A stretch of 64,000 nucleotides of DNA from the NCBI GenBank assembly GCA_002269645.1, contig NIVC01000280.1, forward strand, positions 434,001 through 498,000, read 5' to 3'. The position numbers and the translations under genes are program-made. Positions 2,547 to 59,196 of the stretch are shown in pieces (position 1 is the stretch's first letter; each line of letters opens with the position of its first letter). The stretch is from Macrostomum lignano (lineage: Eukaryota). The notes beneath the pieces were generated by a model. The model saw only the letters and a list, made by a program, of their open reading frames with translations. It did not search any database and had not been told where the DNA came from.

Positions 2547-5500
2547 CTAAGTCGGTCTCGCCAGCTCCGGCATGGCCGCCAGCCGGTCCATCGCGTCCAC
2601 CTCGCAGCCGGTCAGCACATCGTAGCCGTCGCCGTCGAACCTCGGCATCAGGACGGCGAGGCCGTCGAATCCGGCGCTCGGCACGGCGAATCGCAACGGC
2701 CGGCCCCAGCCGAAGTCGGCCTCGTAGACGGGGAAGTGCACCCAGGAGGTGAAGGCCAGGTCGTTGGCGAACATCCGGAAGCCCGGCAGGATGCGCGACC
2801 GGTCGGGCCGCTCGGCCAGCCAGCGCAGGATGGAGCGCAGGTAGTCCGGCGCCGTGCCGCGCGACACCGCGGCGCGAACCCGGCGAGCCAGGCCGGCCAG
2901 GCTGAGGCCGTCGGCCACCTCGCCAGCCGTCAGCTGGTCGGCGATGTAGAAATTCGCGTTGCCAGCGTAGCCGGCCGGCAGCGACAGGCGCTGGCGGGCG
3001 TTGCAGGCCATGGCGAATTTTGTTGGCGCGTCGGCGGGCAGCCGCTTTGCCTTCGTGACGCAGCGCCACAGCAGCGCCACCAAGCAGTCGTTGGTGGTGC
3101 ACTGGACCGCGGGCTGCAGGGGCGGGCAGGAGCTGCTGGTAATTCACACTGGTAGGAACTGGCGACATCCTGACACCCACTGCACTGGCGCCATCCTGAC
3201 ACCCCATAAGGACTTTCTAACAAGGACTTTCTAACAAGCACTTCAATAGCAACAACTGACACACAACTTGAAGCCACTGACACCCCAACTTGAAGCCACT
3301 GACACCCCAACCTGAAACCACTGACACACCAAATTTGACGCTCAAATTCATAATCTCTGTGAGATATTAGTTAAAGCTGTTGAACCTCTTTAAACAGAAC
3401 AGACATCGCTTACTAACGAGTAGCATAAAATTAAGTTGAAAAGAATTTTGTTCCTCCCTACTCAGAAACTGTCACACACATTGCTAGCTATGACCCCACG
3501 TACTAGTTGAGCTGGAGAAGATTAAACAAATTAAAAATTGGGTCTCATGCAGCCCTCTACCGTTTCTGGCAGACCGGCGTCTTGATAAGATAAAAAACTG
3601 AAATAAGAAGTCAGAATAAGAACTTGTTCCTCGCTAACGTAAGGAGTGCCAACTGAAACCCGACGTGGCTAGATCACTTATGAATAACAAATAATAAAGA
3701 ACGCTCGACACTAGGCGAGTAACAAGAAAGGAGTATAAAGCGAAAATGTTGTTAAAGCGTTTGCTAAAAGTATTGTCACTCAGGCAAAAGATTTTGAGCT
3801 TAAAAGACATGAAAGGCAAAGCTTGAGTGTCTGACCTCAAACTTGACGGACGACCCTGACAACCAACTTAGCAACCCTGATAACCATAGCTTGGTGTCCC
3901 TGACAACAAATTTGGCGTCCCTGACAACCAATTTGGCGTCCCTGACAACAAACTTGGCGTTCCTGACAACCAACTTGGCGTCCCTGACAACCAACTTGGC
4001 GTCCCTGACAACCAACTTGGCGTCCCTGACAACCAACTTGGCGTCCCTGACAACCAACTTGGCGTCCCTGACAACCAACTTGGCGTCCCTGACAACCAAC
4101 TTGGCGTCTTTGACAACCAACTTGGCGTCCCTGACAACCAACTTGGCGTCCCCGACAACAAACTTGGCGTCCCTGACAACAAACTTGGCGTCTTTGACAA
4201 CAAACTTTGGCGTCCCTGACAACCAACTTGGCGTCCCTGACAACAAACTTTGGCGTCCCTGACAACCAACTTGGCGTCCCTGACAACCAACTTGGCGTCC
4301 CTGACAACCAACTTGGCGTCCCCGACAACAAACTTGGCGTCCCTGACAACAAACTTGGCGTCTTTGACAACAAACTTTGGCGTCCCTGACAACCAACTTG
4401 GCGTCCCTGACAACAAACTTGGCGTCCACAACAACAAACTTGGCGTCCACAACAACAAACTTGGCGTCCACAACAACAAACTTGGCGTCCACAACAACAA
4501 ACTTGGCGTCCACAACAACAAACTTGGCGTCCACAACAACAAACTTGGCATCCACAACAACAAACTTGGCGTCCACAACAACAAACTTGGCGTCCACAAC
4601 AACAAACTTGGCGTCCACAACAACAAACTTGGCATCCACAACAACAAACTTGGCGTCCACAACAACCAACTTGCCTACTAAATCCCTCCAGCGACGACCT
4701 TCTGCCACCCAAACAATAAAAGTCCCGCTATCTGCTGGGATCTCGCACCGAGCCCCTCTCCCTGACCTGCTCGCCCGGCTCGCTATTAACACTGTTCTTC
4801 AGTCGGGCCAGAAAATCCGCGCTCAGGTGGAACAGACGGGCCGTGAATTGCGGCGCCTGGGTTACTGGCAGCGTCGGCTTGACCTCGGGCTCGGGCGCCG
4901 GCTGCGGCTCCACGTAGGCGTACTCGCGACCTTGGTGGTCGACACTTGACGGGACGCCGTCGGGCTTCAGCACCGACCGGTCGCGGGACACCGGCGGCCG
5001 CTGCAGCTCCGGCTCGGCGGGCCGACCTCCCCGCTGTCGCAGCTCCCGGCAGATGCCGGCCCACCTGGCGTTTTTGATAGATTTCACAAGTTACAAGTTG
5101 GATTTTGATACCTTGCAAGCGTACCATCTGCTCCTTCAGTGGTTCGTGTGCTTGTTAGCTTCGCACGGAGTAACTTCTCCAAGCGCACCTGTTGATAAAG
5201 CCGAAGGCGCCGTCTCCGTCCATCACGTTATGGTGCAGCAGGACGCCTAGCGCCACCGAGTTGTCGGACAGGCGGGTCAGCTTGAACTGCGGGTGCGTGC
5301 GATTTTACATTACGATCCCAACTCAATTATCCCATCTCCGCTACCATGACCCTAACCGAGCCCATCTCACCCCACCCTCAATTCCATCTCCCCCACCCAA
5401 AACCCCATCTTCCCCACCCTCAATCCCATCTTCCCCACCCCCAATCCCATCTTCCCACCCTCAATCCCATCTTCCCCACCCCCAATCCCATCTTCCCACC

Positions 5501-6524
5501 CTCAATCCCATCTTCCCCACCCTCAATCCCATCTTCCCCACCCTCAATCCCATCTTCCCACCCTCAATCCCATCTTTCCCACCCCTAATCCCATCTTCCC
5601 CCACCCTCAATCCCATCATCCCACCCAAAACCCCATCTTCCCCACCCTCAATCCCATCTTCCCCACCCTAAATCCCATCATCCCACCCAAAACCCCATCT
5701 TCCCCACCCTCAATCCCATCTTCCCCACCCTAAATCCCATCTTCCCACCCTCAATCCCATCTTCCCCACCCCCAATCCCATCTTCCCACCCTCAATCCCA
5801 TCTTCCCCACCCTCAATCCCATCTTCCCCACCCTCAATCCCATCTTCCCACCCTCAATCCCATCTTTCCCACCCCCAATCCCATCTTCCCCCACCCTCAA
5901 TCCCATCATCCCACCCCAATCCCATCTTCCCCACCCCCAATCCCATCTTCCCCACTCTCAATCCCATCTTCCCCACCCTCAATCCCATCTTCCCCACCCT
6001 CAATCCCATCTTCCCCATCCCCAATCCCATCTGCCCCACCCCCAATCCCATCTTCCCCACCCTCAATTCTATCTTCCCCACCCTCAATCCCATCTCCCCC
6101 ATAGCAGCACCTTGCACACGAACTGTCCGCAGTCAGCGGGGCTGCCATCCAGCAGGCTGGCCGGCAGTCTGACTGGGTCGAAATTGATGGCCTCGAGGTC
6201 GGCAGCCGAGAAGTCGGCGTTGGCGGTGACCAGCCGGACCCCGCAGTTCTCGGTCACCAGTACGCAGTCACCGGTGCAGTTTCGCTTCAGCCGGTAGTTG
6301 AGATCCGGGAAGTCGACCATGGCCAGCTTCAAGCCCTCGGACAGCAAGTCGAACGGCATGAAGTCTGCCAACCCATTGGCATTCTTGAACACGTAGATGG
6401 CGGTGATGTAACAGGGCGGCATCACGGAGTCAATCGGAGACAGTGGAATCTCTGGTGGGTCGATGCCCGACCACCTGGACAGGTCTGCATGCAGCACTTC
6501 AGCTGTGCTTTCAGTGACAAGCAT
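2547..6524 (-). CDS. BAHD-family (Transferase, HXXXD-type) acyl-CoA acyltransferase, 4 exons, 458 aa
   Basis: Exons 6524-6111, 5286-5189, 5064-4767 and 3113-2547, all with GT-AG introns and consistent phases (1377 nt, ATG to TAG). Catalytic motif LLHHNVMDG (HxxxDG) in exon 2, TTNDCLVALLWRCVTKAK in exon 4, and C-terminal YEADFGWGRP (DFGWG). Length is typical of BAHD enzymes. Confidence 0.92.
3860..4672. repeat. 21-bp minisatellite in BAHD intron 3, two subtypes (CTTGGCGTCCCTGACAACCAA then CTTGGCGTCCACAACAACAAA)
   Basis: Direct inspection; 7-aa periodic ORFs. Confidence 0.95.
5375..6095. repeat. 20/21-bp C-rich minisatellite (CCACCCTCAATCCCATCTTCC) in BAHD intron 1
   Basis: Direct inspection; G-tract-rich on the sense (minus) strand. 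Confidence 0.93.
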
Positions 6525-8481
6525 TTTCTGTGTCTAATTTGCTGCAAATTTTATTCTCATTTGTTAGGACTATCAGCCAAAAATTCAGCTAAAAATAAGA
6601 ATCAACAATTCAAAATTTTAAGAGTTTAAAAACTGAAATATGGAAGTAAATAAAAAATAAAATGTTTAAATGCTTTTGCTAAATTAAAATTTCTGAGGCG
6701 AAAGATAATGCCAAAATTTAAACTTCTAAGAATTTGTTAGAATAAATAGCTACAAGCATATAAAAAAGATTTTCAAAGTGAAGCATAGATATATTTTTAA
6801 ATGTTTTTGTGGACATTAAAGCCAAAAATATAGGTAAAATACATTGTGCTAATTATAATTTTGTTTTTTATTTCACTTTGCAGAGCTTAGTATAGTCCTT
6901 CTTGGAGTGAAGCTTACACCTTGTATAGTTATTAATATTGGTAAAATGGCCTTATTTAATAGAATGAAATTAATCAAAGCCAAGAAAACAATAATCTGAC
7001 CCACTTAAAATATCATATTTTATGTAAACTCTTAATTTCAACTATTAAGGTCTTTATATGACTTAATAAAATATGCTTTTAAAGATTTGTCTTTAAACCA
7101 AATAAATAAAGTATTCCAGGAATTTGTGATGACATTAAAAGTAAGCACAAGATTAAGAATCGAATGCGCAATTAACAAAGAACAATAGGTTCCGTAGATT
7201 TAATTACACGAAAGTAGGACTACTCGTAGCTTGTTTACCTTCAAGTAAAAAGTAAGTAAATAAATATTGCCACCAATCAAGCAGTAGCTACAACTGGGGA
7301 CAAAAATTAAACATTTGCAACTACGCGTGCGCGGTTTCTTGCATTTTGGATGTTTTGAATTGACGGGAACGTTTCTCGGAAGCTAAAACGCTTTTACGAA
7401 CAATCGTATTACTTTCTTTAATTAATTATTAATTGCTTTATTAATTGCTTAACTGCTTTTATTATTTGCTTTTCTTCTGGAGACACACTGCTTCGCTTTC
7501 ATGAGAAATAAGGATATCATAAATGCTGCGGCGACTCTGCTAAAGTACACGCTATTCGTTATAAGTTACTCGTAATTGTCTAGGTCAGCTCTATCAAACG
7601 TTTAACCGGACCCATAAACAACACTGTACCCTTTAAATTATCAAAGAGTGAAGATTCTTTCTACAAAGGACAAAAAAGTGCTCACTTCTGCTGAATATCA
7701 GAAATTACACTTGTAGTGCCTTGCTCAAGAACAGGACTACAGCCATACATGCATGTATTAGGATATGCTATACATGTGCGACTTTGTGAGTCTTTTAATA
7801 CAATAGAATTGCACTGCCGTTGCCACCAGTTTCTCAGTACCCTTTTTAATGCTAAAAACAGATTGCTGTATAGATGATAATTAATTCAGTTGATTTCTGG
7901 TAATAAAACGCTGGTATAAAATGTCAATCTCCGAAATTTTTCCTTTACACCGTGTAAGGTTTTCAAAGTTTTATTTGATATACTTAACAATTTTTTTCAA
8001 AAGGAAAATTAAAATTAAAGGTCGAGGATTTGTTCCAAAAATACTTTTGTAACGGATGGTTTACATGAAATCTGAAAATATTTTCGAAACTCTAAATAAG
8101 ACGAGACCTGGATACGATGGATTTTAACACAGAGTGGAGACTGAGAGGAAAAAACTCTAAGAATGCAAAATGCCATTCATTCAAAAAATCATTCACAGAG
8201 GTGCATGCTTATCATAGATACTTTGTGCGCTTAAAAAAACAATAAAATAATTTCTAGGCAGTCAGTTTATCTTCGGATCTTATTCACATGGCTTGCATAT
8301 ATGCTTATCTGCAATTCGCTTAAACTCAATGTAGGAATTAAGAGTTATCATTGTTATACCAGCAGTATAAAGTGGCAATCGGGCAATTTTTCGCTGTATA
8401 CTACTGAATAATTCAAAGCAGCAGTACATTGAGCAAAATGCCAACATTTTACTGCTCTCACATAATAGTGATGACGTCACA

Positions 8482-11400
8482 TCACACTATCGCGGCGGCC
8501 AATCGCAGCTGCCTCTCCCGCCGGCGCCGCCTGGCGCAGGGCAGCAGCAGAGCGTCCAGGGTACGGCGCCCCATCCCGCCGGCGTCGGGTTGCGACGTTG
8601 GAAATCGAAAATCCGCGATTGCGGCCGGCCGGCCGGTGACGGGAGGCACTCGGTCGAGGTCCTGAAACCGCAGGCTCTGACTGTCCTGGATGGACACCCG
8701 GCCAGAGAAGAAATACTCGACTAGCAGCTCCGCCAGGGAGTAGCACTGCTCATACTCTTGCTGCAATGCGAGTGAACAGTGGCGAATGAATTTGGACACT
8801 TTTAGCCCAAAAACCGGCGCCCAGGAAGCAGCAGAAAGAGCTATTATCAGAGGTCAGTCACTTTCAGACGCGCTAATAAAGGAGTTTTTAGCGAAAATCG
8901 AAGGCGCCAAAAGCAACTTCTCTGCTGGCCATGGTTGTCACGCGGAAGGCTTCATCATTAGCACACCCCATGAAAGGCCACAATTTTCATACTGCACTAC
9001 TATCAGAGAGTAGGACAGATGGTGCCCAATCTCGGAAACCAAAACTCACCTGGCTGCCAACCAGCTGCGGCCGATTGCGCTTCACCTTTTCGACTGCCCG
9101 GAAGATGTCCACCTCGCCCTCGTAGCGCATCTTGTCCATGGTCATGTGCAGCACGCAGAAGACTCCGCACTTGGTCACTCCGTCGCTGCGCAATGGCGGG
9201 AACAAATTTACTTAGGGACAAAATCTTCCTAGTGATGAAATTATCGTTGCGTTGATAAATCAAACTAACCTGCTAACGACTAGTAGAGGACTCGAACCCG
9301 GGGTCTCCTCCAGATTCTGATTGGTTGACTCGGCCAGACAGGCGAGCTCGAGGAGGCCGTGACTGCCGCGACTTCGGCTGGAGGTTGGCCAGGGCGAGGC
9401 CAAGCAGAGGAAGGCCACGTGACGGACGTCCTGGGAGAAACCAGAGGGGCCCCCGCTGCCGATCTGTTGGAGTTGCGAGGTTCAGATTAAGAGTAACAAT
9501 GCCGACCGAGTGACATTGTGTTTGAGTGAAATTGTGATCGAGTGACATTGGGATCGAGGGACATTGTGATCGAGTGACATTGTGATCAAGTGACATTGTG
9601 ATCGAGGGACATTGTGACCGAGTGACATTGTGACCGAGTGACATTGTGACCGAGTGACATTATAACAGTTTTTATTCCTGTTATCTTCTGCTCACAAGTC
9701 AGAAAGAATTTCTAACACACTGGCCTCTGATGGCCCTGTTATGAGTGTGAGGCTCACATCTCCGAATCTCTCTCTGTGCCGCAAATTATTCAAGACAGTG
9801 TATTTTATAGTCAAGCAAGCAAACTGGTTTAGTTGACAAAATGAAGAGCAATGCATAGTTTGAGCGGGGCAGGGTTATCGCTCGAGCATTTTTCTCTGTC
9901 CCGCTGTTAGGCAACCATATCACCCCCCAAAGCATTGCTGCGAGTCTACTGTGTCACGCGTTCGCAGGCTGCTGGCTTGGCCTTCGAACCTCAGCTTTGT
10001 TATCTGCCCTTTAGTGTAGAGCTGGTCTACACTAGGTTCGGATAGAACCGGTCGAGACGAGAGGAGGCCGTTGTTTTTTCGCTTCGATGTAAGCACAATT
10101 CCAGTGCTTACAGACATTGTGACCGAGTGATATTGCGACCGAGTGATATTGTGATCGAGTGACATTGTGTTTGAGTGACATTGTGGTTGAGTGACATTGT
10201 GACCGAGTGATATTGCGACCGAGTGATATTGTGATCGAGTGACATTGTGATCGAGGGACATTGTGATCAAGGGAAATTGTGATCGAGTGACTATGATTTA
10301 AGTTACATTATGTAGTTATCTCGTATCTGACCTTTACGTGAGTGGCATAGTGACAGAGTGAAAATTATAACAGAAAGAAATTACTGTTGTGCAAAATTGT
10401 AGCTGTCAGAATTTCCGACTGAGTGGTATTTTGGATGAGCAGAATTGCGATACTGCTGGCAATAATTGTGTACCAGATATGCAACAAAACCGTGCCAGGA
10501 AATGCAGGATGGAGGCAGGCAGCTCTGTGTGAAATGAAGCCGTGTGAGGCTTGAGAGAAGAAGAGTACAGAAGCCCCAGACAGCATTCCGTCCGGGGCTG
10601 CGAGAACCGTCGGGGAAGAGAAGCGATTGTCGCCAAGGGGAGCAGGTTAACCATATAAGCCACTCTGTGACGCGCTGAGCCCCAAATACTCAGGAATGAA
10701 GCTGGGGTGGGCCGGTGAAGTGAGGAGATAAGCAAACACTGGCATAGGCAGATAGGCCCAAGTCATGGGAGCCGGGTTGACGGCCGGGTGGCCCAGTGCA
10801 ATTATATTATTGAAGTTCTCAGCAAAGACGTTTTCATGGAAAATATTTCCAACCACCCCGATTGCTGGAACGCTGCTAAGCTGGTTGAAGAGAGACGTCT
10901 GCTCTGAGCTGCAGAGGGGGGTAAATTTCAACTCCTCTTCCACTTAATAATGCTACTTTATTCCCAACATCTCCAAGCCGGCTTCCCTTGCAGTCGGGTT
11001 GGCTCGTCCCTATCAGTGCAGTGCAAGTAAATCTGCGTGTCGGGGCCCAATATCGCGCGGGATGCAGGGTGGCCGCTGCTCTTGGGAAACAATTCATCAG
11101 GCTTTTCATGGGTAGGGCTTTTTTGAAAAAAAATCCCCTTCAGTTTGGTCTGCAGGGTGGTTGTAGACCATGGCAGCGCCTTCTTACCCTCAATTCTCTG
11201 CTCTCTCTCCCTCTCTATGCTCTCACTTTCCAGCTCAGCACCTTTCCCCTTTTGCCCTCCAGCCTGCCAGGCCGCCATAAAGTCCACTTTTGCGCCCCGA
11301 GATCCTCCTTTGACAGGCTGGCGTGCCGCCCGCCTGTTAGATGGGGAAGCTGGAGGGATTAAAGACAGGTTTGAGCCCGACCGCCCTCTCTCTCTCTAAC

Positions 11401-14400
11401 CTCCACTTCTCCAGGCCCAAACACTGGACCTGGTGATGAATTGGGAAGTTGATTTCGTGGAACTAAGGGCCCACTCACGCTCCCAGCATCGAGAGAGATT
11501 GTACAGGCCACCGATATTTCATAGAAACTGAACTGTTGGACCAGCCGACCTTGATAGCTAATTCGTAGGAAAATAGTTTGTCCTTCAAAGAGACATTGTT
11601 TTTGGTTAGAGATAGTGGCTTTTTTATCGCTTACGAGCTATAAGATCAATCTACGAGCATAATTCTCACATGTAGTGTATATTAATAAAAGTAATATTTT
11701 TAACTGCGCCACCATATCGAGTGGGGAGTAGGTCTTATCGATTTTCCGGCAAAGGACCCCAACCCCCAACACCCCAATTTTCCTATCCCCACGTCCGCAA
11801 CCCCCCCCCCCCTTAATTAGATCTGTCTGCTAAGCGACTTACGTTAACCTCAGCGGGGAGTGGGGTGGGTGAAGTTTATCGATTAATGCTTATACACTCG
11901 GCACCCACCCCAGCCGCAGTTTTCCTACCCCGCCCGATACTCGTGTACACAGCAGCCAAGATCAGGTCTGTTAGCTGACGAATCTTTATTGACGCTCTCG
12001 TGAGATGGATGAGGACTATTGAGTTTCTGATGTTAGTCGAATTTAAACTCTAGTAGGACAAAGTTAGTCTAAGTAGCCATCCATATGCTAGAAGGAATAA
12101 AAGTTTTTGTAAGTACTATAATAATGCTAGAATTATTCTATCAGAATTCCTAACCTTTGTAACGGCGTGCATCCTGCAGAGCACACTCTCGGTGGCTCTG
12201 AACTCGTCCTGCTTGATGGCAAACACTGAGCCGAATCCCTGCTCCGAGCCGGTCTCAGCTGGCCAGAATCTCGGCTGCGAGCCGGTGCCGCCACGGCTGG
12301 AGTCGGACAGCAGCACCACCACTGACACGTGGTGATCGTGGATTAGCTTCCAGAAGTCGCAGACAGTATTCTTCAGCGGCCACTGGGTCACAATGTACTG
12401 ATTGGTCCGACTATGCCCCTGCCAGTGGTATTTTAGATAATATACTTTTAGTGGGCACAATGCTCATAGAGCATTTCAGAGTATGAACACTGGGCTATTC
12501 GTATAATTTACCGTGGTATGTCTAGAAATTTAGGGAGCTGCCACCGAGCCCTACAATTTACTCACATCAACATAGACAGCATTGATGAAGTCCGTGCTGG
12601 ACGCGCTGTCCTGCGTCAGCAGGTAGGGCCTGGCTCGCTCGGCTGAAGGTGGCGCGGAAATCAGGTGATAATTTTAAATTCAAGAACACGGAACCAACGA
12701 TCTAGCAAACTTAATGAGCAGCTTGTACTTCATTGACAGCTCTGACAAACAAAAAGATTAAAAATCATATTTGATAAATGAAGCCCGCCGTGTAAAGTCA
12801 GCTGGACGGTTTGACAGTGATTAATTAACCTGGGACGGATCAAGGATTTCGTCTTGGCTGCCTTGCATCTTCTGTCGGACAGAGGGCAACGTTGTTTCAG
12901 GCGATGATCCAGGTCGTAAGAAGGTTTTTAACAGGGCCAAGTCAAGGACCTGCCCCAGGATCTGCCTCGTCGTCGGAGACTCCAGGCGGTAGGCCACATC
13001 ATCCGCGTCGAGTCCTACTGCTCACAGTATAGGGTGCTGCTGATGCTGCAGACACTCTGAGTACCCTCAGCGAGTCTACCATTCCGTAATCCACTTTCAA
13101 TAGACGAACTACCATCAGATAGCTAATTGCGACTTGCACCTGACACCTTGATTGGGTGAACTACTGAATTTCTGAGATCAGAATCCTAGCATCAGCCCGA
13201 TGAAAACGGTACCTGGGCCAAGAAGCGTCTCAGAGTCACTTGTGTCGCCCCAGGGTCGTTTTAGAGTCGTTGCAGATGATACAGGTAAAATAAGAAAGAA
13301 GTGACGTGGGACTAAACTCTAAAACGACGAGATTTCACGTTTAAAGCCGCCGAAAAAGTCATCAAAGATTCGCCCAAAAGTCACTTTGAAGCGTTTTATT
13401 GTCTGCGACTCTGGAACGACTCTGGGGCGGTCGACGCAACTCACTCTGGCTTGACAGTATAACTACTCTGGGCGGTAGAGTCGTATTTGAGGCGTGCTTC
13501 GTGCTTGAGTCGTTGTAGTCACTGAGTTGTGTTTGAAGCGCATTTTCGTAGCTTGATGAAGTAGAGTCACATTTCTAGCGAAAGTCAAGCGTCAGCACAA
13601 CGAGTTTGAGTCGTTAAAAAGTCAAAATAGTCGCCACGGAGTCGCAAGAGGCACGAGAGAGTTGCTTGCAACGATTTTTTTAGCGATTCTCATCCACGCT
13701 AACGTTTGCAACGGGCAGTGGAGTCAGCCCAGTCAGTGCTCCTGCACCCCTCCCTTGGTAGTCCAGCTGCTAGCCAGGGACTCACGCGGCTGCACCATGA
13801 CGTCTCGACTTTTCCATCGATTCTCCGCCCGATGCCCGCCCGCGCACTCGCCGACGCTGAGCGGCTTCACCAGGCCGGCCAGGCAGGTGAACTCCGCCGA
13901 GAAGCCGGTCGCCTGGCTGCCACCCGACGGGTCGCGCTGGGCCATCCTGGCGGTCAGCTTAGCGAAGTCGAACACCTTCACGGTGGTCGGTCGGCAGGCC
14001 AGCGCCGTGGCCACAGTCTCGTACACGAACCGGTACTGGCTGAGGTTGCCCACCAGGCCTGGCCGGGCTTTGCGCAGCGCCAGCGTCTGCTGAAGAATGT
14101 CAATGGGCCGGCCGTCCTCCGCCTTGCTGACTTCGATGTCGATGCAGATGTACGTACCGGTGCGGCCCGCCCCGTCGCTGGGTCGGGGAGCGGTTTCGGA
14201 GGATTTTCAGGACTTTTCGGATTTTATGAGGACTTTGTTTAGGTAAATGTCGACGGTACAATTAAAAGTACTAGGGGCGCCAAGTTCAGGTACTAGGGGC
14301 GCCAACTAGGGGGCGCCAAGTTCAGGTTCTAGGGGGCGCCAAGTTCAGTTTCTAGGGGGCGCCAAGTTCAGTTTCTAGGGGGCGCCAAGTTCAGGTACTA

Positions 14401-17400
14401 GGGGGCGCCAAGTTCAGGTACTAGGGGGCGCCAAGTTCAGGTACTAGGGGGCGCCAAGTTCAGGTACTAGGGGGCGCCAAGTTCAGGTACTAGGGCAGAG
14501 CATTCATTAGTCTGGTCTTTAAAAGTTAGAAAAGTACGCATTCAGGCTTTATAGATTGTGCTGCGCAGTATTTTATCTTAGAAGCATCATTCAAATAAGT
14601 TGGCACAATGCCCACCCAGTTCCAGGATGCGGAGGTGCAGTCAGTTTAAAGTAAAAAATGGGATATTAATTCTGTCCCTGAACGCGGACAGCGGAGGTCC
14701 CGGCAGTGCCGGACACAGGGGGGGGGGGGGGGTTAAAAAGAGATCGGCAAAGATTTGAGTTTCAAAATCAGGAAATTGAATGGACTAAAAGAGCCAGGAG
14801 GCATTGTGCCGTGTAGAGGGATCTGGATGCTCCGCTTCCTGCTGTCGTGGGGTTGGGCCATTGCTGCTCAGGCTCGCTTCTTCTGGTGTGGCGTTGCAAA
14901 AAAAGTTTTTTTTTAAACCGGAAGAGAGCCGAGGACAAGCAATGTCGGTGGGACCAGACGCTGGGTAAGAATATCTTGTGCGAGATTTTCCGTTTCAGAT
15001 ATTCTTTTTAATATTTTAGTTATTATATTTCACAATCCGCATTCGACTCGTGCATGCCAAGGGGCGCCACTTTGGTATCGGGGGCGCCACTTTGGTATCT
15101 GGGGCGCCACTTTGGCATCTGGGGCGCCACTTTGGTATCTGGGGCGCTACTTTGGTATCTGGGGCGCCACTTTGGTATCTGGGGCGCCACTTTGGTATCT
15201 GGGGCGCCACTTTAGAACTAGGTTGCCACTTTGGTATCTGGGGCGCCACTTTGGTATCTGGGGCGCCACTTTGGTATCTGGGGCGCCACTTTGGTATCTG
15301 GGGCGCCACTTTGGTATCTGGGGCGCCACTTTGGTATCTGGGGCGCCACTTTAGAACTAGGTTGCCACTTTGGCATCTGGGGCGCTACTTTAGAACTAGG
15401 TTGCCACTTTGGTATCTGGGGCGCCACTTTGGTATCTGGGGCGCCACTTTGGTATCTGGGGCGCCACTTTGGTATCTGGGGCGCCACTTTGGTATCTGGG
15501 GCGCCACTTTAGAACTAGGTTGCCACTTTGGTATCTGGGGCGCCACTTTGGTATCTGGGGCGCTACTTTGGTATCTGGGGCGCCACTTTGGTATCTGGGG
15601 CGCCACTTTGGTATCTGGGGCGCCACTTTAGAACTAGGTTGCCACTTTGGTATCTGGGGCGCCACTTTAGAACTAGGTTGCCACTTTGGTATCTGGGGCG
15701 CCACTTTGGTATCTGGGGCGCCACTTTGGTATCTGGGGCGCCACTTTGGTATCTGGGGCGCCACTTTGGTATCTGGGGCGCCACTTTGGTATCTGGGGCG
15801 CCACTTTAGAACTAGGTTGCCACTTTGGCATCTGGGGCGCTACTTTAGAACTAGGTTGCCACTTTGGTATCTGGGGCGCCACTTTGGTATCTGGGGCGCC
15901 ACTTTGGTATCTGGGGCGCCACTTTGGTATCTGGGGCGCCACTTTAGAACTAGGTTGCCACTTTGGTATCTGGGGCGCCACTTTGGTATCTGGGGCGCCA
16001 CTTTGGTATCTGGGGCGCCACTTTGGTATCTGGGGCGCCACTTTGGTATCTGGGGCGCCACTTTAGAACTAGGTTGCCACTTTGGTATCTGGGGCGCCAC
16101 TTTAGAACTAGGTTGCCACTTTGGTATCTGGGGCGCCACTTTGGTATCTGGGGCGCCACTTTGGTATCTGGGGCGCCACTTTAGAACTAGGTTGCCACTT
16201 TGGCATCTGGGGCGCTACTTTAGAACTAGGTTGCCACTTTGGTATCTGGGGCGCCACTTTGGTATCTGGGGCGCCACTTTGGTATCTGGGGCGCCACTTT
16301 GGTATCTGGGGCGCCACTTTGGTATCTGGGGCGCCACTTTAGAACTAGGTTGCCACTTTGGTATCTGGGGCGCCACTTTGGTATCTGGGGCGCCACTTTG
16401 GTATCTGGGGCGCCACTTTGGTATCTGTGGCGCCACTTTGGTATCTGGGGCGCCACTTTGGTATCTGGGGCGCTACTTTGGTATCTGGGGCGCCACTTTG
16501 GTATCTAGGCGCCACTTTGGTATCTGGGGCGCCACTTTGGTATCTGGGGCGCCACTTTGGTATCAGTGGCGCGACTTTGGTATCTAGGCGCCACTTTGGT
16601 ATCTGGGGCGCCACTTTGGTATCTGGGGCGCCACTTTGGCATCTGGGGCGCCACTTTGGTAACGGGAGCGCAATAAAAACAATTCGTACTTTTCGATAAG
16701 AACTTTAAATAAACAGCGTCACAACGTCACAGGCTGTCACGTGACCTACCTGCAGTGCACGATGATTGGTGCGCATTTGCCGCGCACCCAGTCGTTGACT
16801 TTGCGTCGAATTTCGATCACCGTGGTTGGCAGCGGCGTGTCGAAGTGGCTCCAGTTCTTGAACTGGAACTGCCGGACCAGCCGCGTCTCGCAGCCGGCCT
16901 GGCGAGGCGGAGGTGAAGACATGCACCGATCTATGCACCGATCTATGCACTGATCTATGCACTGATCTATGCACTGATCTATGCACTGATCTATGCACTG
17001 ATCTATGCACTGATCTATGCACTGATCTATACACTGATCTATGCACTGATCTATGCTCTGATCTATGCTCTGATCTATGCTCTGATCTATGCACTGATCT
17101 ATGCACTGATCTATACACTGATCTATGCACTGATCTATACACTGATCTATGCACTGATCTATGCTCTGATCGCCGCACTGATCTATGCACTGATCTATGC
17201 ACTAATCTATGCACTCATATAGACAAAGCCACTAACCTTTTTAACCTTGAACAGCCGGCTCTCGTACTCGGCAGTTGAGTACAGGTCGTCAAGCCACACG
17301 TCAATGTCGCCAAACCTGGCATAGACATTGTGCCAGTACTTGTCGCACTGTTGCTAGAAGTTTGGACCAGCAAAATTTCTGAATTAGTTTGGAGTAGCTA

Positions 17401-20400
17401 ATCCGGTATAAGGGGATTAAGCCAGGGAGGCTTAAGACTCTTGACTCACCCTGGCGTGCTCAAACAGATTCGTAGTCATGACGATGCAGCAGCAGCGGTA
17501 CTGCCACACCATTCGCCAGAAGTCATTTTTAGTAGCCGCCAGGGGGCCCTGGGCGGCAATGAACTTCTTGGGCTGGTTGTAGCCCTGCCGATAATTTGGG
17601 GATTAAGAGATCGTAAACTATCGGATGCTCGTGATAAAAAATTAAGCAGAAGCCATTAAAACTTTTTCTCACATCAATCCAGCTGGCGTTCATGTAGCCG
17701 CCGCCCTCAGCCACGTCGGGCTCGCCCAGACCCGGCTCCAGACGGACTATGTTGCGTTCGTCTGGGGAGAGGGGAGATCGGTGAATGAGGTTTAGTCGGT
17801 GAATGGGGATAAGGGAAATTGGTGAATGACGTTTAGTTGGTGAATAGAATCTGGGAGATCCGTGAATGAGGTGGAGTTGGTGAATGGAATCTGGGAGATC
17901 CGTGAATGAGGTTTAGTTGGTGAATGGGAAACCGAAGCTTGGTGAATGAGGTTTAGTTGGTGAATGGAAAGTCGGGGAGATCGGTGAATGAGGAGCGGTT
18001 GGTGAATGGGGAGTCGGGGAGATCGGTGAATGAGGAGCGGTTGGTGAATGGGAGTCGGGGAGATCGGTGAATGAGGAGCGGTTGGTGAATGGGAGTCGGG
18101 GAGATCGGTGAATGAGGAGCGGTTGGTGAATGGGGAGTCGGGGAGATCGGTGAATGAGGAGCGGTTGGTGAATGGGGAGTCGGGGAGATCGGTGAATGAG
18201 GAGCGGTTGGTGAATGGGGAGTCGGGGAGATCGGTGAATGAGGAGCGGTTGGTGAATGGGGAGTCGGGGAGATCGGTGAATGAGGAGCGGTTGGTGAATG
18301 GGGAGTCGGGGAGATCGGTGAATGGAGATCGGAAGATGACATGAATGAGGGCACCGATCCCAATTAATCTTTACGAATGCAACCTGTTGGTGCGGCACTC
18401 ACACGGCAGGACTCGTTCACTGAGGTTTTTCTCTTTATTGCACGGCAGCTTGGCGGCCTCAGCAACCTTGTGCTGACCTTCGCTTCTGATGCTGGCCTGC
18501 GGGTTCGGGGATTCAGGGATGGCGTTTTGATAGAGGTGTGTTTGCGGGCCCTGAGGAGCTGAGGTGGCGGGCCCTGAGGAGCTGAGGTGGCAGACCCTGA
18601 GGAGCTGAGGAGGCAGACCCTGAGGAGCTGAGGTGGCAGACCCTGAGGAGCTGAGGTGGCAGACCCTGAGGAGCTGAGGTGGCAGACCCTGAGGAGCTGA
18701 GTTGGCAGACCCTGGGGAGCTGAGGTGGCAGACCCTGGGGAGCTGAGGTGGCAAACTTTGAGAAGTTTGCTTTGTGGCCCCTGGGGATTTCAATTATTGA
18801 CGAGTCTTTCTCGATTAAATTTCATTTTTGATTTCCTCACCGACTGCTTCTCGCCCACAGAGATTTGCTCGATAGCCTGAAAAGGACAGTTGAGATCGAT
18901 AAGCTCATTTTTCATAATCTCATTAATCCAGCGAAATCCGATACGCCTAAAGAAACGTTGAACTTATTGAACTCTTCAGACTGTGTGGAGCTTTACTAAA
19001 TAATGGAATCAGCTTCAGAAAATTGGCAGCAGCCCTGAGTCTGCCTGAGTCTGTGCTCAAAACTCAGCTTGCCAGCTTTGCGCAGAAACAGGAAAAAAAG
19101 CAATTGTGGCAGCTGCCACTGAAGACGCGTGAGAGAGCGATGATACAGACCCAAGCCATGATGGGAGCCCTGGTGCCAATCGATAAATGCTTTGAGCCGG
19201 CGGCTTGTGGAGCCAGTTGTTCTCTCTACCCTGTCAGGCAAGCAGAGATTAATTTTTCATCAAAGTAGAAATTTCCTGCTTGGAGACAGAGCAGCGCCTC
19301 AAGTCAAGCCGCCTCACTCTGGCAAACTGCCGCAGGATGTCGTAGAGAGGAGGCAGGCGACTTTCGTAAAATGCGTGAAGAATATTCGAGGTTGAATCTC
19401 AGATTGAATGAATTGGCCATTGACTGACTGCATACTGTGGAGTCCCTACTACACGAGTGTCTTCCCGCGATAATACCCTGAGGTACGCGTCTGCAGTGCA
19501 TGTCCGTGTCTGCATGTCCATGTCTGCATGGCCATGTCTGCATGTCCGTGTCTGAATGTCTGTATCTGCATGTCCGTGTCTGCATGTCTGTGTCTGCATG
19601 TCCGTGTCTGAATGTCTGTATCTGCATGTCCGTGTCTGCATGTCTGTGTCTGCATGTCCGTGTCTGCATGTCTGTATCTGCATGTCCGTGTCTGAATGTC
19701 TGTATCTGCATGTCCGTGTCTGCATGTCTGTATCTGCATGTCCGTGTCTGCATGTCTGTGCCTGCAGTGCGTATCCATGTCTGCATGTCCGTATCTGCAT
19801 GTCCGTGTCTGCATGTCCGTGTCTGCATGTCCGTGTCTGCATGTCCATGTCTGCATGTCCGTGTCTGCATGTTCGTGTCTGCAGTGCATGTCCGTGTCTG
19901 CATGTCCATGTCTGCATGTCCGTGTCTGCATGTCCGTGTCTACATGTCCGTGTCTGCATGTCCGTGTCTGCATGTCCGTGTCTGCATGTCCGTGTCTGCA
20001 TGTCCGTGTCTGCAGTGCGTGTCCGTGTCTGCATGTCCGTGTCTGCAGTGCGTGTCCGTGTCTGCATGTCCGTGTCTGCAGTGCGTGTCCGTGTCTGCAT
20101 GTCCGTGTCTGCAGTGCGTGTCCGTGTCTGCATGTTCGTGTCTGCAGTGCATGTCCGTGTCTGCATGTCCATGTCTGCATGTCCGTGTCTGCATGTCCGT
20201 GTCTGCATGTCCGTGTCTGCATGTCCGTGTCTGCATGTCCGTGTCTGCATGTCCGTGTCTGCATGTCCGTGTCTGCATATCCGTGTCTGCATGTCCGTGT
20301 CTGCATGTCCGTGTCTGCATGTCCGTGTCTGCATGTCCGTGTCTGCATGTCCGTGTCTGCATGTCCGTGTCTGCAGTGCGTGTCCGTGTCTGCATGTCCG

Positions 20401-23263
20401 TGTCTGCATTTCCGTGTCTGCATGTCCGTGTCTGCATGTTCGTGTCTGCAGTGCATGTCCGTGTCTGCAGTGCGTGTCCGTGTCTGCATGTTCGTGTCTG
20501 CAGTGCGTGTCCATGTCTGCAGTGCGTGTCCATGTCTGGAGTGCGTGTCCATGTCTGCAGTGCATGTCCATGTCTGCAGTGCATGTCCATGTCTGCAGTG
20601 CATGTCCGTGTCTGCAGTGCATGTCCATGTCAGCAGTGCATGTCCGTGTCTGCAGTGCATGTACTCATACTGCAGCTCCACAACCAGCCGCTACTCACCT
20701 TGTACTCATACTGCAGCTCCTTGTTCCGGGTCCTGCGCCGGTGCTCCTTCACGAAGGCGGCAGCTTCGATGGGGTCCTGGCTGACTCGGTTCAGCCTGCG
20801 CTCCTCTTCCACTAAAATTTTGCGCTCGTGAATGAGACTGCAGACCTTCCACAGGAACATGGCCGCTGGCTCAGACAAGGGGGCTGGAAACTGACAAAGA
20901 CTCGGCAGGGGGGATGCGACCGGCCAACTCCATTTGATGGGTCTCAAATTGCTGAAGTCAAGCTTTCTCAGCTGCCTTCTTTTTAAAACAAAAGTCCTGA
21001 CTTCGTAGGCGGCGGCAAGGTTGGGGGGCTGCTGGAGGAGATGGAGAGCGGAGGCTGGGGACACAATAGCCGGGGGAGATGATGGGGTGCCCAGAAACAA
21101 CAAACAAATGTTTAGCGAGAGGGAAGAAGCGATGGAGCAACAGAGCAGCTCAGCGGATCTGGGGCGCAGCGTCAGCTCTGGCCCTTGATTAAATAAGTGC
21201 AGCACTAAAACGCGCACACGCCACTTGGGCAAGCCGTTCTGTGCTGCGCAATCTTGAGTCTATGGGGGGTCAGTGTTGGGTCACTGTGAAGTGACTAGCT
21301 CCGTTCCTGTGCCTCTCTCTCTCTCTCTCTCTCTCTGACGAGATGGAATGCGCTCACCTCCAGATGGGTGGGGGTGCTCCACCAGTTCTCAATCCCTACT
21401 CTCTGTCCCGCTCTCCTCCTTTTTAATGGGGGGGGGGATTCAATGGCAGCAGCCTTTCTGGCTGGTGGGCAGCGGGGGTGGGGCGAGGGGAGACTGAGCA
21501 GTGAGGGATAGAGAGGCGCAGGCGATGCAGCTGGGAGTCTGGGAGATGGCGTTGCAGCTTAGGTATTGGTCTAGACTGGTCCCAGTGATGAGCAGCGGCT
21601 CAGGCTGCTACTCATGCTCTACTGTATCTGCTCCATTGTTGCCGGCGCTCCTTTGTCTCTCGCGATTCCAGCATCTCTGCTGCACTGCTGAAGCCAGGCT
21701 GCTTGCAGCAAAACAAAAGACGCAGCTGCAGAGCATGCGAGCTACACTAAGAAGCGCCATGCAGGGTAAAGTTCTGGCTGGGACTGAGGCAGTGAAAATG
21801 GAGGTGCTCAAATTCTTGCCTTTTTTGTCGATTGACCTGAACAGCTGCTGACAAAGCGTGAAATTCTCGCTAGAAACCAAACTCTTTGAGCCCAAGGAAT
21901 ATCACATTTTTCCGATCAAAAAGCAAGCAGGCAGCAAAAGAGACGCGCCTTGAACTCACTCAGCTCCCGTTTCTGGCTTTGCAATTGTCTGCGAGATCTG
22001 GAAATCAGAGAGGAGCGGGGGAAGAATTACTGCAGAGTTGCTTGAGCGCTTTTTCTGTGATCGCTTTTTCGATCAGGCAAAGCCCCGCTCTGGGCGCCGG
22101 GTTGCCGGAAACGCTGCCAGCTAAGGGGGGTTGCAGTCGATACGCTTCGATACTGTTGAAACATTCTGCACTGGACCTCGAAAACAGACACTACAATAGC
22201 AGCAGACAAGAGCTGCACTGCATGAGTGGTGCTCACCTCAAATGCTTGAGAGTCGCAATTCCCAGCGCGAGCATCAGGGTGGACACGCAGCACATCCAGG
22301 TGAGGGCTGCCTCGTAATTCTTGGCAGATTCAATCGCCCTGAGCTGCTGCCGAGATGCGTCTGGCAGCGGGAGTGACGAATAACCACGTAGGAATGCGGC
22401 ATTTGCTACTGTTAGTAGGGCCTACTGTGGATCTTGGCGATCTACACGTTTTACCTTCAGCATTCTCAATACGTTTATGCTGCAACTGATTCTGTGACTC
22501 GGGGTCTCAGTAGTGCGTGCGACTCTACATCTGGAGTATTGCTTGCCATGGTGGTCGAGCACTCTTGTGTCTGTCATGTTGGTCCAGCACTCTTGTGTCT
22601 GTCATGGTAGTCCAGCACTCTTGTGTCTGTCATGGTGGTCCAGCACTCTTGTGTCTGTCATGGTAGTCCAGCACTCTTGTGTCTGCCATGGTGGTCCAGC
22701 ACTCTTGTGTCTGTCATGGTGGTCCAGCACTCTTGTGTCTGTCATGGTGGTCCAGCACTCTTGTGTCTGTCATGGTAGTCCAGCACTCTTGTGTCTGCCA
22801 TGGTGGTCCAGCACTCTTGTGTCTGTCATGGTGGTCCAGCACTCTTGTGTCTGTCATGGTGGTCCAGCACTCTTGTGTCTGTCATGGTAGTCCAGCACTC
22901 TTGTGTCTGCCATGGTGGTCCAGCACTCTTCTCTTGTGTCTGTCATGGTGGTCCAGCACTCTTGTGTCTGTCATGGTGGTCCAGCACTCTTGTGTCTGTC
23001 ATGGTAGTCCAGCACTCTTGTGTCTGTCATGGTGGTCCAGCACTCTTGTGTCTGCCATGGTGGTCCAGCACTCTTGTGTCTGTCATGGTGGTCCAGCACT
23101 CTTGTGTCTGTCATGTTGGTCCAGCACTCTTGTGTCTGTCATGGTGGTCCAGCACTCTTGTGTCTGTCATGTTGGTCCAGCACTCTTGTGTCTGGCATGT
23201 TCAGTCCCACACAGAATCGCTCACTTACAAAAACTTACACAGGCTGTCATTAGTTGCAAGCAT
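8482..23263 (-). CDS. Receptor-type protein tyrosine phosphatase-like protein (short ectodomain, TM, tandem D1/D2 PTP domains), 14 exons, about 737 aa
   Basis: Exons 23263-23239, 22360-22237 (TM AALTWMCCVSTLMLALGIATL), 20837-20699 (wedge PIEAAAFVKEH..ELQYEY), 18496-18403, 17761-17673 (YMNASWID), 17584-17450 (FIAAQGP..DFWRMVW), 17353-17237 (CDKYW), 16898-16750 (PIIVHCS), 14177-13786 (DGAGRTG..QYRFVY), 12642-12566 (DFINAVYVD), 12418-12155 (YIVTQWP..DFWKLI), 9463-9270, 9185-9050, 8760-8482. All introns GT-AG with matching phases, total 2214 nt. The first exon and the exon-4 acceptor are less certain than the PTP exons. Confidence 0.88.
9508..10292. repeat. Two blocks (about 9508-9662 and 10112-10292) of a 16-bp repeat GTGACATTGTGATCGA in a PTP intron
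   Basis: The same unit occurs in both blocks, separated by about 450 bp of unique sequence. Confidence 0.88.
14267..14493. repeat. 23-bp minisatellite (TACTAGGGGGCGCCAAGTTCAGG)
   Basis: About 10 copies, direct inspection. Confidence 0.92.
15060..16658. repeat. 20-bp minisatellite (GGGGCGCCACTTTGGTATCT) with interspersed TTAGAACTAGGTTGCCAC variant units
   Basis: 1.6-kb array in the PTP intron between exons 8 and 9; source of the many spurious ORFs at 15016-16699. Confidence 0.97.
16920..17215. repeat. 12-bp minisatellite (ATCTATGCACTG)
   Basis: Fills the PTP intron 16899-17236. Confidence 0.95.
17785..18325. repeat. 42-bp G-rich minisatellite (GGTGAATGAGGAGCGGTTGGTGAATGGGGAGTCGGGGAGATC)
   Basis: 14-aa periodic ORF; fills a PTP intron. 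Confidence 0.93.
18551..18752. repeat. 23-bp minisatellite (CCCTGAGGAGCTGAGGTGGCAGA)
   Basis: About 9 copies just upstream of PTP exon 4. Confidence 0.92.
19490..20660. repeat. 14-bp minisatellite (CATGTCCGTGTCTG) with CTGCAGTG variants
   Basis: 1.2-kb array in PTP intron 3; source of the His/Cys-rich spurious ORFs. Confidence 0.96.
22545..23195. repeat. 28-bp minisatellite (GTCCAGCACTCTTGTGTCTGTCATGGTG)
   Basis: Fills PTP intron 1. Confidence 0.95.
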
Positions 23264-38324: not shown

Positions 38325-38831
38325 GCTCTGAGTCTAGCTAGCTTGCGACGCCATGTAATGAACGCGCAACCGAGAGATACGTGTATTATTCAAGAGTGCC
38401 AAAAAGCATATTATATAGAGGGGCGAGGGGGGCTGAGCAATCGATAGCAACGTACATGATTGTGGGACGGGGCGGCTGGGGCGCAGATGTGCGTACAATA
38501 AATTATAGTTACAAGTGCATCACTGACAATTATGAGCCTCTGCCAATTATACTTATCTCAACTTTTTATAATATTGATGTTTTATTAAAATAAAGGTTAG
38601 GCCACAAAGAACCCGATATGGTTATGTTTTTTTATGCTGCCTATTTATGACATTCCATATAAATTCTAGAACTTAAAAATTTCATGACCATGAATGCCAT
38701 GACTCCTATATATACCACAAAACCCTAGTATAGATCTTTTATACTTTTAACTTTTATATCTATGAACCTTTGTAGAACTAGAAATATACCATCATAAACT
38801 TGTGTACCATTTATGTTCTTTCCAGCGCGCA

Positions 38832-40135
38832 ATGCAAAGCTACCTGACCCCTGAGCAGCGCCAGTTCTATGCTGACAATGGCTACCTGGTGATTGACAGC
38901 TTCCTCAGTCCTGAGCAGTGCGAGGAGCTCCGTAAAGAGTGCCACCAGCTGACTGCCACGTTCAACCTGGACGAGCACCGGACCATCTTTGACGCCAAGA
39001 ACCGCGACAACGAGGCCGAGCAGAGCTACCGCTCCCAGCAGTACTTCTTCGACAGCTGGAACAAGGTGGCCTTCTTTTTTGAGAAGGACGCCTTCAACGA
39101 CAATGGCGAGCTGACGGCTCCTCGCAACCAGTGCATCAACAAGCTGGGCCACTACCTGCATGTGGAGTGTCCCGGCTTCCGGCGCGTCACCTTTGATCCC
39201 AGGGCTCAGGCTATTAGTAGGGATCTGGGATTCCAGGTGAGTAAATTAGCTATTAGCGAGGATCTGGATTCCACGTGCTTCCATTATACGCTGTTCCTGA
39301 CCCTTGCCTTCTCAAAGCTTCTTCAGACTTATTGTTGTCTGTCCCGACTCTCCGCAGGTGCCCCGCATCTGCCAGAGCATGTACATCTTCAAGCAGCCGC
39401 GCATCGGCGGTTGCGTCGACTCGCATCAGGACGCCACCTTCCTGTGGACGGAGCCGACGGAGCCGCACCTGATTGGCTACTGGATCCCGCTGGAGGACAC
39501 CACGCAGGAGAACGGCTGCCTGTGGTTCGTGCCCGGCTCGCACCGCTCCGGACTGGTGGACGGACGCCGGTTCAAGCGGGAGATCGGCCAGGACGGCCGG
39601 GTTAGCATGACTTTCGTTGGCAGAGATCCCAACGAGATCGTGCCCATTGAGAGATACGTGCCTTGCGAGGTGAGGGTCTTGCGGCACCTGGTAATGTCAC
39701 TAGTCTTTGTGTCGCCTTTGTGGTGCACTTCATAGAACCTCGGTCTTTGTTCCGCCTACTACAACCTCAGTCTTTGTGCTGCCCCTACTTCCTCAGTCTT
39801 TGTACCGCTCCTACATCCCCAGTCTTTGTACCGCCCTACATCCCCAGTCTTTGTACCGCCCTACATCCCCAGTCTTTGTACCGCTCCTACATCCCCAGTC
39901 TTTGTACCGCCCTACATCCCCAGTCTTTGTGCAAAACTCGCAGGTGAAGCGCGGCTCCCTGGTGCTGATTGACGGCTTTGTGCTGCACAGAAGCAACGAG
40001 AACCGCAGCCAGAAGTCAAGAGACTGCTACACCTGGCACGTGATCGACCTGCCCCCCGGCATTAGCTGGTCAGCCGAGAACTGGATGAACCCGCCGGATG
40101 TGAGCAGCGGGTTTGAGCTGCTATGGAAGGAATGA
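38832..40135 (+). CDS. PHYHD1: Phytanoyl-CoA dioxygenase domain-containing protein 1-like, copy 1 (302 aa from internal Met)
   Basis: Exons 38832-39236, 39358-39669 and 39944-40135. Fe(II) ligands HQD and distal H (VLHRS), 2OG-binding N-x-S-x-K-S-R, and family motifs QSMYIFKQPRIGG, FFFEK, INKLGH. Confidence 0.9.
39760..39930. repeat. 25-bp repeat (CAGTCTTTGTACCGCCCTACATCCC) in PHYHD1 intron; related units at about 44790-45110
   Basis: Direct inspection of both paralog introns. Confidence 0.85.

Positions 40136-47696: not shown

Positions 47697-59196
<11,500 letters not shown>

Follow-up and report, generated by a model that had tools for sequence, protein, structure and literature searches.

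A BAHD acyltransferase gene resident in the genome of the flatworm Macrostomum lignano and its animal-borne and fungal relatives

How a gene for a BAHD acyltransferase comes to reside in an animal genome is the question raised by a 64-kb stretch of Macrostomum lignano DNA (positions 434,001 to 498,000 of contig NIVC01000280.1, assembly GCA_002269645.1; this whole stretch is called the window below, and features are given in its coordinates). BAHD acyltransferases drive much of the specialised metabolism of plants and fungi, and to our knowledge the sole well-studied animal case is that of the plant-derived detoxification genes of the whitefly. The gene in the window is known only by automatic annotation ('Transferase', 'hypothetical protein'); we found no paper describing it, and literature searches on BAHD or PF02458 genes in flatworms, rotifers and cnidarians, on horizontal gene transfer (HGT) in M. 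lignano and on Mlig030323 returned nothing relevant. The analysis presented here adds a further case of an animal-resident BAHD gene and suggests that a cryptic BAHD lineage may exist in animals.

Gene structure, copies and constraint

Enumeration of GT and AG sites around the open reading frame (ORF) fragments of the minus strand gives, within 2547-6524, a gene of four exons and three GT-AG introns that encodes 458 amino acids (aa) (Table 1). Several GT/AG combinations are in frame in this enumeration, and the combination 6524-6111/5286-5189/5064-4767/3113-2547 yields the 458-aa protein. An earlier, sequence-only reading of this DNA had proposed just such a gene, carrying both BAHD signatures, and its structure was recovered in every respect: HHNVMDG (residues 156-162) is encoded inside the 98-bp exon 5189-5286, where HNVMDG had been reported, and DFGWG occupies residues 403-407. 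The same is true of its description of minisatellite-filled introns, introns 1 and 3 being mostly made of a 21-bp minisatellite, and of exons as rich in GC at third codon positions (GC3) as those of the neighbouring genes, the value being 0.86 for the coding sequence of the BAHD gene versus 0.65-0.84 for exons of the neighbouring protein tyrosine phosphatase (PTP), phytanoyl-CoA dioxygenase (PhyH) and angiotensin-converting enzyme (ACE) genes. The spliced protein is identical to the UniRef/UniProt entry A0A1I8INC0, identical over 454 aa to GenBank PAA86452.1 and the same at 457 of 458 positions as A0A1I8JM83, all three from the free-living M. lignano, and the exons and intron lengths of the window are those of contig NIVC01000280.1 (723 kb) of GCA_002269645.1. 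The gene model, its motifs and its animal neighbours are not attributable to chance.

Minor isoforms are possible, because other splice combinations are also open. In an alternative 416-aa model of the gene (P0162, UniRef A0A1I8FGT2), the protein begins 34 residues later than the 458-aa form, and eight residues are missing where exons 3 and 4 join, around position 263. The motif TTTGCAG, which precedes the start codon, could be a 3' splice acceptor, either of an intron in the 5' untranslated region (UTR) or for trans-splicing of a spliced leader (SL); 38.8% of M. lignano genes are trans-spliced (PMC5730564).

Three near-identical, intact copies of the gene, homeologous or allelic, are present in the assembly, where their contigs measure 69, 426 and 723 kb. 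A Headcase gene lies downstream of the BAHD gene in all three, and the two larger contigs both carry a C1/RhoGAP/SH2 (chimaerin-like) gene downstream and a short gene upstream, the latter probably being the 3' end of the PTP gene, as judged from the window coordinates. Exon 1 of the window is 100% identical to that of copies L003 and L004, and the same three GT-AG introns are kept in 3/3 copies, with lengths of 511/124/2791 bp (L002), 824/124/1653 bp and 245/123/1197 bp (L004). Intron 2 thus measures 123-124 bp throughout, and the length differences between copies reflect variation in the length of the minisatellite arrays. The sites that vary among the copies comprise nine synonymous and five non-synonymous ones (omega ~0.19), compared with the 74% of sites expected to be non-synonymous under neutrality (binomial p = 0.003), which shows that the gene is under purifying selection.

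RNA-seq data (StringTie/TACO) and a transcriptome assembled de novo were the only sources of the gene models of GCA_002269645.1 (Mlig_3_7), which were also filtered by expression (PMC5730564). As models Mlig030323.g1, g3 and g4 carry exactly the junctions described here, spliced transcripts of the BAHD gene are implied.

Could the gene nevertheless be contaminant DNA, a product of chimeric assembly or a functionless, decaying pseudogene? Nothing points in this direction beyond its GC-richness relative to the surrounding intergenic DNA. The three loci lie on long PacBio contigs and are flanked by the same animal genes, the gene is found in a separate UniProt protein set as well (the A0A1I8... 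entries), its introns are filled with minisatellites of the host type, the reading frames and GT-AG sites are intact in all copies, and both the low omega value and the transcript-based gene models argue against decay. The sequence-only reading had likewise argued against contamination, from composition, introns and animal neighbours, and this view is upheld. The gene is therefore a resident host gene, contamination, chimeric assembly and a pseudogene being effectively excluded. Linkage to host genes together with host-like introns and composition, one line of evidence usually asked for in cases of HGT into animals, is thus present at this locus.

Fold, motifs and predicted chemistry

The spliced protein matches the PF02458 'Transferase' profile with an E-value of 2.1e-46 and 158.9 bits (cut-off 22.7), over profile positions 18-427 of 434, so that the family assignment made in the sequence-only reading holds over nearly the full profile. 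HHNVMDG and DFGWG fall in conserved columns of 114 homologues, and H157 and D161 are invariant in a 32-sequence alignment (A1). AlphaFold2, run with a 32-sequence alignment, gave a model with a pLDDT of 92.1 and a pTM of 0.91, with lower confidence (pLDDT 72-89) in a Pro-rich stretch at about 181-240, in exon 3. When this model was compared with the PDB using Foldseek, the best 50 matches were all BAHD proteins, the top ones being plant HCT and agmatine coumaroyltransferase (ACT) with TM scores of 0.79-0.86, and a sequence search of the PDB returned HCT, RAS and ACT at E-values of 1e-40 to 1e-27. As modelled, the protein thus shows the two-domain BAHD (chloramphenicol-acetyltransferase-like) fold with both the HxxxD and the DFGWG motif.

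In BAHD enzymes a solvent channel runs between the two domains, and here the histidine of HxxxD serves as the general base: it activates the hydroxyl or amine of the acceptor, which attacks the acyl-CoA thioester. The aspartate and DFGWG are structural. By analogy, the M. lignano protein would be a cytosolic BAHD (PF02458) acyl-CoA-dependent acyltransferase. His157 would deprotonate the hydroxyl or amine of a small-molecule acceptor, the activated acceptor would attack the thioester of an acyl-CoA in the interdomain channel, and Asp161 and DFGWG would have structural roles.

The closest characterised relatives are clade V enzymes, which use hydroxycinnamoyl- or benzoyl-CoA. Selectivity for shikimate in HCT depends on an arginine handle (AtHCT R356, SmHCT R372; PMC6203249, PMC9950517). 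In the M. lignano protein the column of this HCT/HQT handle (AtHCT R356, SbHCT R371), which binds the carboxylate of the acceptor, is occupied by P380 of a conserved PGF motif that it has in common with homologues of early-diverging fungi and protists; a bona fide HCT of a fern, included in that alignment, reads VRGA here. With the handle replaced by Pro380, the acceptor would not be shikimate in the manner of plant HCT, and we predict from the alignment an enzyme that transfers acyl groups from acyl-CoA to an O or N atom of a small molecule that is neither shikimate nor quinate. Detoxification of dietary compounds, proposed as one possible role in the sequence-only reading, is speculation.

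Relatives of the gene and its origin

When 1.84 billion representative proteins were searched exhaustively with phmmer, 2860 matched at E <= 1e-3, 42 of them at E <= 1e-30; taxon labels cover about 40 of the best 150. No homologue with more than 50% identity was found outside M. lignano in searches of 5.8 and 1.8 billion proteins. The best match, a transferase from Basidiobolus meristosporus, a zoopagomycete fungus (248 bits, E = 1e-68, 36-39% identity), is followed at a distance by full-length matches of at most 187 bits. The next labelled matches belong to the oomycete Pythium, Endogone (Mucoromycota), the amoebozoan Phalansterium and the chytrid Hyaloraphidium, and labelled matches also include Dentiscutata (Glomeromycota), the xanthophyte Tribonema, the holozoan Pigoraptor, liverworts, lycophytes, ferns and Ginkgo; the BAHD family is widely and patchily spread across eukaryotes. 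A word-indexed protein search with the M. lignano protein, a 32-sequence profile and a Hydractinia protein returned almost nothing beyond self. A scan of bacterial and archaeal genomes with P0008 gave no confirmed relative, bacteria being otherwise assessed only by their absence among the labelled top matches; alignments A1 and A2 contain no stretch of sufficient conservation for such a scan.

Some unusual architectures were seen among these proteins (P0157, P0006 and P0007). In Phytophthora palmivora an 848-aa protein is annotated as a fusion of acyl-CoA oxidase and BAHD (PF01756 + PF22924 + PF02458), and Pythium oligandrum (771 aa) has a multi-BAHD protein, as does Turnera subulata (1640 aa). 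Such proteins may be genuine fusions, or may stem from the merging of separate gene models.

Two of the matches are animal-borne. The first (P0132) is LOC130647511 of the hydrozoan Hydractinia symbiolongicarpus, with LOC130647513 next to it in tandem on a chromosome of 33.9 Mb (L006:10001-11433 and 16006-17307); with LOC130636699 as a third locus, Hydractinia has at least three. These copies are nearly intronless and have the variant motifs HxxxDR and DFGLG, and the literature searches turned up nothing on them. The second (P0015) is encoded by a two-exon gene on the 9.7-kb Logan contig SRR25018404_8546, about 450 bp from a homeodomain exon (Table 1). The top matches of this homeodomain among solved structures are Ftz, Antennapedia, Abd-A, Scr and Ubx, which makes it a central-class (Antp-class) Hox homeodomain and the contig bilaterian DNA. 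A multi-exon gene resembling dienelactone hydrolases is found on the same contig. A Hydractinia-like protein, P0048, is encoded on a gene-poor contig with an ORF that we take to be the C-terminal tail of a metazoan long interspersed nuclear element (LINE) reverse transcriptase, Pfam giving it no support. BAHD genes, which the sequence-only reading had set outside the standard animal repertoire, are thus not unique to M. lignano among animals. Orthologues widespread across Metazoa had been named there as evidence against transfer, and in part they have appeared: relatives in at least two other animals weaken an HGT reading without refuting it.

The phylogenetic position of the M. lignano protein was analysed by maximum likelihood (ML) on a 36-taxon L-INS-i alignment of about 416 columns, with BLOSUM62-derived reversible rates (+F+G4). 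Both a full search by nearest-neighbour interchange (NNI; log-likelihood (lnL) -29220.3) and placement on a backbone tree put M. lignano on the stem of a clade formed by the Hox-contig gene, NCBI contig GCA_024449895.1, the Hydractinia genes and environmental relatives, hereafter the animal-type clade. The grouping with this clade has 98% local NNI support by resampling of estimated log-likelihoods (RELL), the best alternative being 10.8 lnL worse, and its sister group is, with weak support (40%), Basidiobolus + Endogone + Dentiscutata. Over values of alpha from 0.7 to 1.6 and column occupancy thresholds from 0.5 to 0.9, the placement on the animal-type stem retains a likelihood weight of 0.96-1.0 and RELL support of 0.67-0.89. 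Making M. lignano the sister of Basidiobolus costs 5-14 lnL under every setting, and placing it next to Pigoraptor more than 50 lnL. The placement holds when either half of the clade is removed and dissolves when the Hox-contig sequence is left alone. Columns that carry the signature of the clade number 13 in M. lignano versus at most seven in any other taxon put in its place. Taken together, these analyses are suggestive, with moderate support, of a grouping of M. lignano with the animal-borne BAHD genes. Distance trees (Kimura, Scoredist and ML-gamma distances) are unstable, joining M. lignano to the Hydractinia-type group, to a long branch or to Basidiobolus, never above 45%, and were not relied on for placement.

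The ML tree also bears on a plant-to-animal transfer of an HCT-like gene, as in the whitefly BtPMaT1/2 genes to which the sequence-only reading had drawn attention. Such a transfer would agree with the plant HCT, RAS and ACT structures that head the PDB matches and with the several bryophyte, lycophyte and fern proteins found within the top 25 matches. The PDB ranking is a sampling effect, since the BAHD structures deposited there are essentially from plants and Fusarium only; plant matches score below those from fungi, oomycetes and Amoebozoa, the arginine handle of HCT is missing, and plant sequences form separate clades far from M. lignano in the ML tree, its protein lying outside the land-plant HCT clade. 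A whitefly-type transfer therefore finds no confirmation here and must be judged highly improbable.

Introns offer little help on the question of origin. Those of the M. lignano gene follow codons 138, 170 (phase 2) and 270, that of the Hox-contig gene lies near aligned residue 70, a different position, and the Basidiobolus gene is intronless and stands in a fungal gene context. No intron position is common to the M. lignano gene and its relatives in Basidiobolus, Hydractinia and the Hox-linked contig, and the comparison is uninformative for origin. What can be said is that the gene is old in its lineage, because it predates the genome duplication behind the three copies, has the GC3 of host genes and contains three host-type introns that its closest relatives lack.

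The old HGT proposed in the sequence-only reading survives in part. The gene is indeed old and no contaminant, its best match is fungal and its affinity is non-plant; on the other hand, it is nested in no donor clade, as the usual phylogenetic demonstration of HGT would require, and it groups with relatives borne by other animals. The M. lignano gene would belong to a sparse, highly divergent animal-borne set, to which early-diverging fungi (Basidiobolus, Endogone and Dentiscutata) form the nearest outgroup. We lean slightly towards an ancient acquisition, perhaps before the origin of flatworms, from a donor resembling fungi or protists; other animals may share this acquisition or have paralleled it. 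A transfer that was recent, specific to Macrostomum or derived from plants is less favoured than this reading.

Several points weigh against such an ancient acquisition. Both the distribution of the family among animals and the closest donor are seen only through the labelled fraction of the matches, and in raw similarity Basidiobolus ranks above every animal sequence. The ML analysis was home-made and rearranged trees by NNI only, the sequences are only 22-39% identical to one another and RELL support stays below 0.95, so that long-branch attraction may be behind the animal-type clade. Bootstrap replicates of the distance trees recover the exact clade in only 5-10% of cases, often with M. lignano beside other long branches. 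Transcription and splicing, finally, are implied by the way the annotation was built rather than read from the transcripts themselves.

One rival explanation is a direct transfer into the Macrostomum lineage alone, from a Basidiobolus-like (Zoopagomycota) fungus or an unsampled protist, the grouping with animal genes then being a long-branch artefact or the result of parallel transfers. The lead of Basidiobolus over all other matches fits this explanation, as does the failure to find a closer homologue from other animals among the labelled top matches. Among these, the best non-animal match (1e-68) contrasts with the recognised animal-borne ones (1e-39 and 5e-22) in the way looked for in HGT, an alien-index-style difference between 1e-68 and 1e-39 of about 67 natural-log units. 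The introns, common to no relative, and the distance trees, which sometimes (12-21%) pair M. lignano with Basidiobolus, point the same way. Against it stand the lower likelihood of the Basidiobolus position under all settings, the signature columns, which point to the animal-type clade, and the lack of nesting in a donor clade at 36-39% identity. On balance, a transfer confined to this lineage appears rather unlikely.

A serious alternative of another kind requires no HGT at all: the gene could be a vertical relic, a BAHD of the opisthokont or early metazoan ancestor kept in a hydrozoan, a macrostomid and at least one other bilaterian and lost many times elsewhere. All recognised animal-borne sequences fall in one ML clade, whose weak sister relationship with early-diverging fungi would fit opisthokont descent, and the very long branches among its members fit a cnidarian-bilaterian age. 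Moreover, the family occurs in Holozoa (Pigoraptor), Amoebozoa, chytrids, Mucoromycota, Zoopagomycota, stramenopiles and plants, and is therefore old in eukaryotes. Such descent would, however, require dozens of independent losses in Metazoa, and the sequence of the holozoan Pigoraptor does not lie near the animal clade. The animal genes have no common intron positions, the nearly intronless tandem copies of Hydractinia look more like acquired genes, and support for the clade is moderate at best. We consider vertical descent improbable, serious though it is. If it were true, BAHD would be an ancient eukaryotic family that most animals have lost, and no plant or fungal invention borrowed by animals.

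The cnidarian and bilaterian relatives raise the question of whether animals harbour a hidden, patchily kept BAHD lineage or have captured such genes repeatedly. Macrostomum is a further animal with an old, constrained BAHD gene, one of non-plant affinity, and as a transgenic model amenable to RNAi it offers access to the role of the enzyme in animal metabolism.

The surrounding DNA and comparison with known systems

The receptor-type PTP and ACE genes that the sequence-only reading had named as neighbours are real, their exons being identified by Pfam domains (Table 1). Two PhyH genes and a fragment of a long terminal repeat (LTR) retrotransposon are also found in the window. About 2 kb upstream of the BAHD gene, GCA_002269645.1 has an annotated gene of 124 aa at 8482-9145 on the minus strand. 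Its coordinates overlap the final Y_phosphatase exon (8990-9211), so the annotation has probably made a separate gene of the 3' end of the receptor-type PTP.

Introns filled with minisatellites are found all along the window, those of the ACE gene included, which agrees with the 15% of the M. lignano genome made up of tandem and simple repeats (PMC5730564). The arrays are long and clean, with periods of 12-57 bp and up to 80 copies, and account for much of the intronic and intergenic DNA (for example 2-606, 15061-16661, 19497-20654, 22547-23199, 56098-57059, 58205-58879 and 60081-61605). A perfect (CTA)225 repeat is also present. One such array (40652-42484) disposes of a candidate gene, a 403-aa ORF at 41343-42554 (also placed at 41346-42566) on the minus strand with weak HEAT_2, Clathrin and CHDNT matches in Pfam, which is a translated 24/48-bp minisatellite and was rejected.

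Table 1. Features of the BAHD gene and its surroundings in the window, and of the Hox-linked BAHD contig
Feature	Position	Strand	Remarks
Exon 4	2547..3113	-	567 bp including TAG stop (2549-2547); C-domain, PGF (P380-F382), DFGWG (403-407)
Intron 3	3114..4766	-	1653 bp, GT..AG, phase 0; 21-bp minisatellite 3854-4673 (x38.8), smaller arrays 3208-3332
Exon 3	4767..5064	-	298 bp; end of N-domain and crossover loop
Intron 2	5065..5188	-	124 bp, GT..AG, phase 2
Exon 2	5189..5286	-	98 bp; catalytic HxxxD (H157 N V M D161 G)
Intron 1	5287..6110	-	824 bp, GT..AG, phase 0; mostly 21-bp minisatellite 5361-6101 (x35.6)
Exon 1	6111..6524	-	ATG 6524-6522, codons 1-138; N-terminal part of BAHD N-domain; from splice enumeration
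5' flank	6525..6560	-	AT-rich tract, then TTTGCAG 17 nt upstream of ATG; read from sequence
Tandem Y_phosphatase (PTP) exons	8990-14206	-	Pfam domains
LTR-retrotransposon pol fragment (RVT_1, RT_RNaseH_2, Integrase_H2C2)	34918-37054	-	GC3 ~0.49, unlike host genes
Two tandem PhyH genes	38766-40132 and 42945-45307	+	large minisatellite between them
ACE (Peptidase_M2) exons	47661-58196	+	Pfam domains
Two-exon BAHD gene on SRR25018404_8546	L008:4319-6053	+	one intron of ~350-400 bp
Homeobox exon on SRR25018404_8546	L008:6508-6828	-	

Compared with systems already known, the M. lignano protein is most easily set beside the plant clade V enzymes HCT/HQT, RAS and ACT (PDB 5fal, 4ke4, 5kjt and 7cys), which belong to the same Pfam family, have the same two-domain fold within the TM range given above, carry HxxxD and DFGWG at the same positions and are the closest solved structures (E ~1e-39). 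It differs from them in sequence (24-28% identity), in having Pro380 and PGF in place of the arginine handle, in its animal host and in its separate position in the tree. The fungal Tri101 (PDB 2rkv and 2zba) is of the same superfamily and fold but is distant, matching only in the C-terminal half (E ~7e-11) and with 16-20% identity in the structural alignment.

Closer in sequence are Basidiobolus ORX94943.1 and the other PGF-type BAHD proteins (Endogone, Hyaloraphidium and Phalansterium), which have in common with the M. lignano protein the motifs DRS.L, EY, STNDA..LWR, PGF..F and DFG(W/Y)G. All of these proteins, however, are uncharacterised; that of Basidiobolus comes from an intronless gene in a fungal context, and it is not the sister of the M. 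lignano protein in the ML tree. The Hydractinia genes (LOC130647511, LOC130647513 and LOC130636699) and the BAHD gene of SRR25018404_8546 are alike in being PF02458 genes of animal genomes and in having the 13 signature columns in common with M. lignano, but their proteins are only 22-30% identical to that of M. lignano, their intron positions are unlike its own, and those of Hydractinia have HxxxDR and DFGLG.

The whitefly BtPMaT1 and BtPMaT2 genes resemble the M. lignano gene in being intron-bearing, expressed BAHD genes of an animal genome flanked by animal genes. They encode malonyltransferases acquired from plants, with 40-58% identity to plant proteins, are reported to nest within plant genes and have a proven role in detoxification (PMC9599486). 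The M. lignano protein, in contrast, is at most 39% identical to any other and is closest to fungal and animal-borne sequences.

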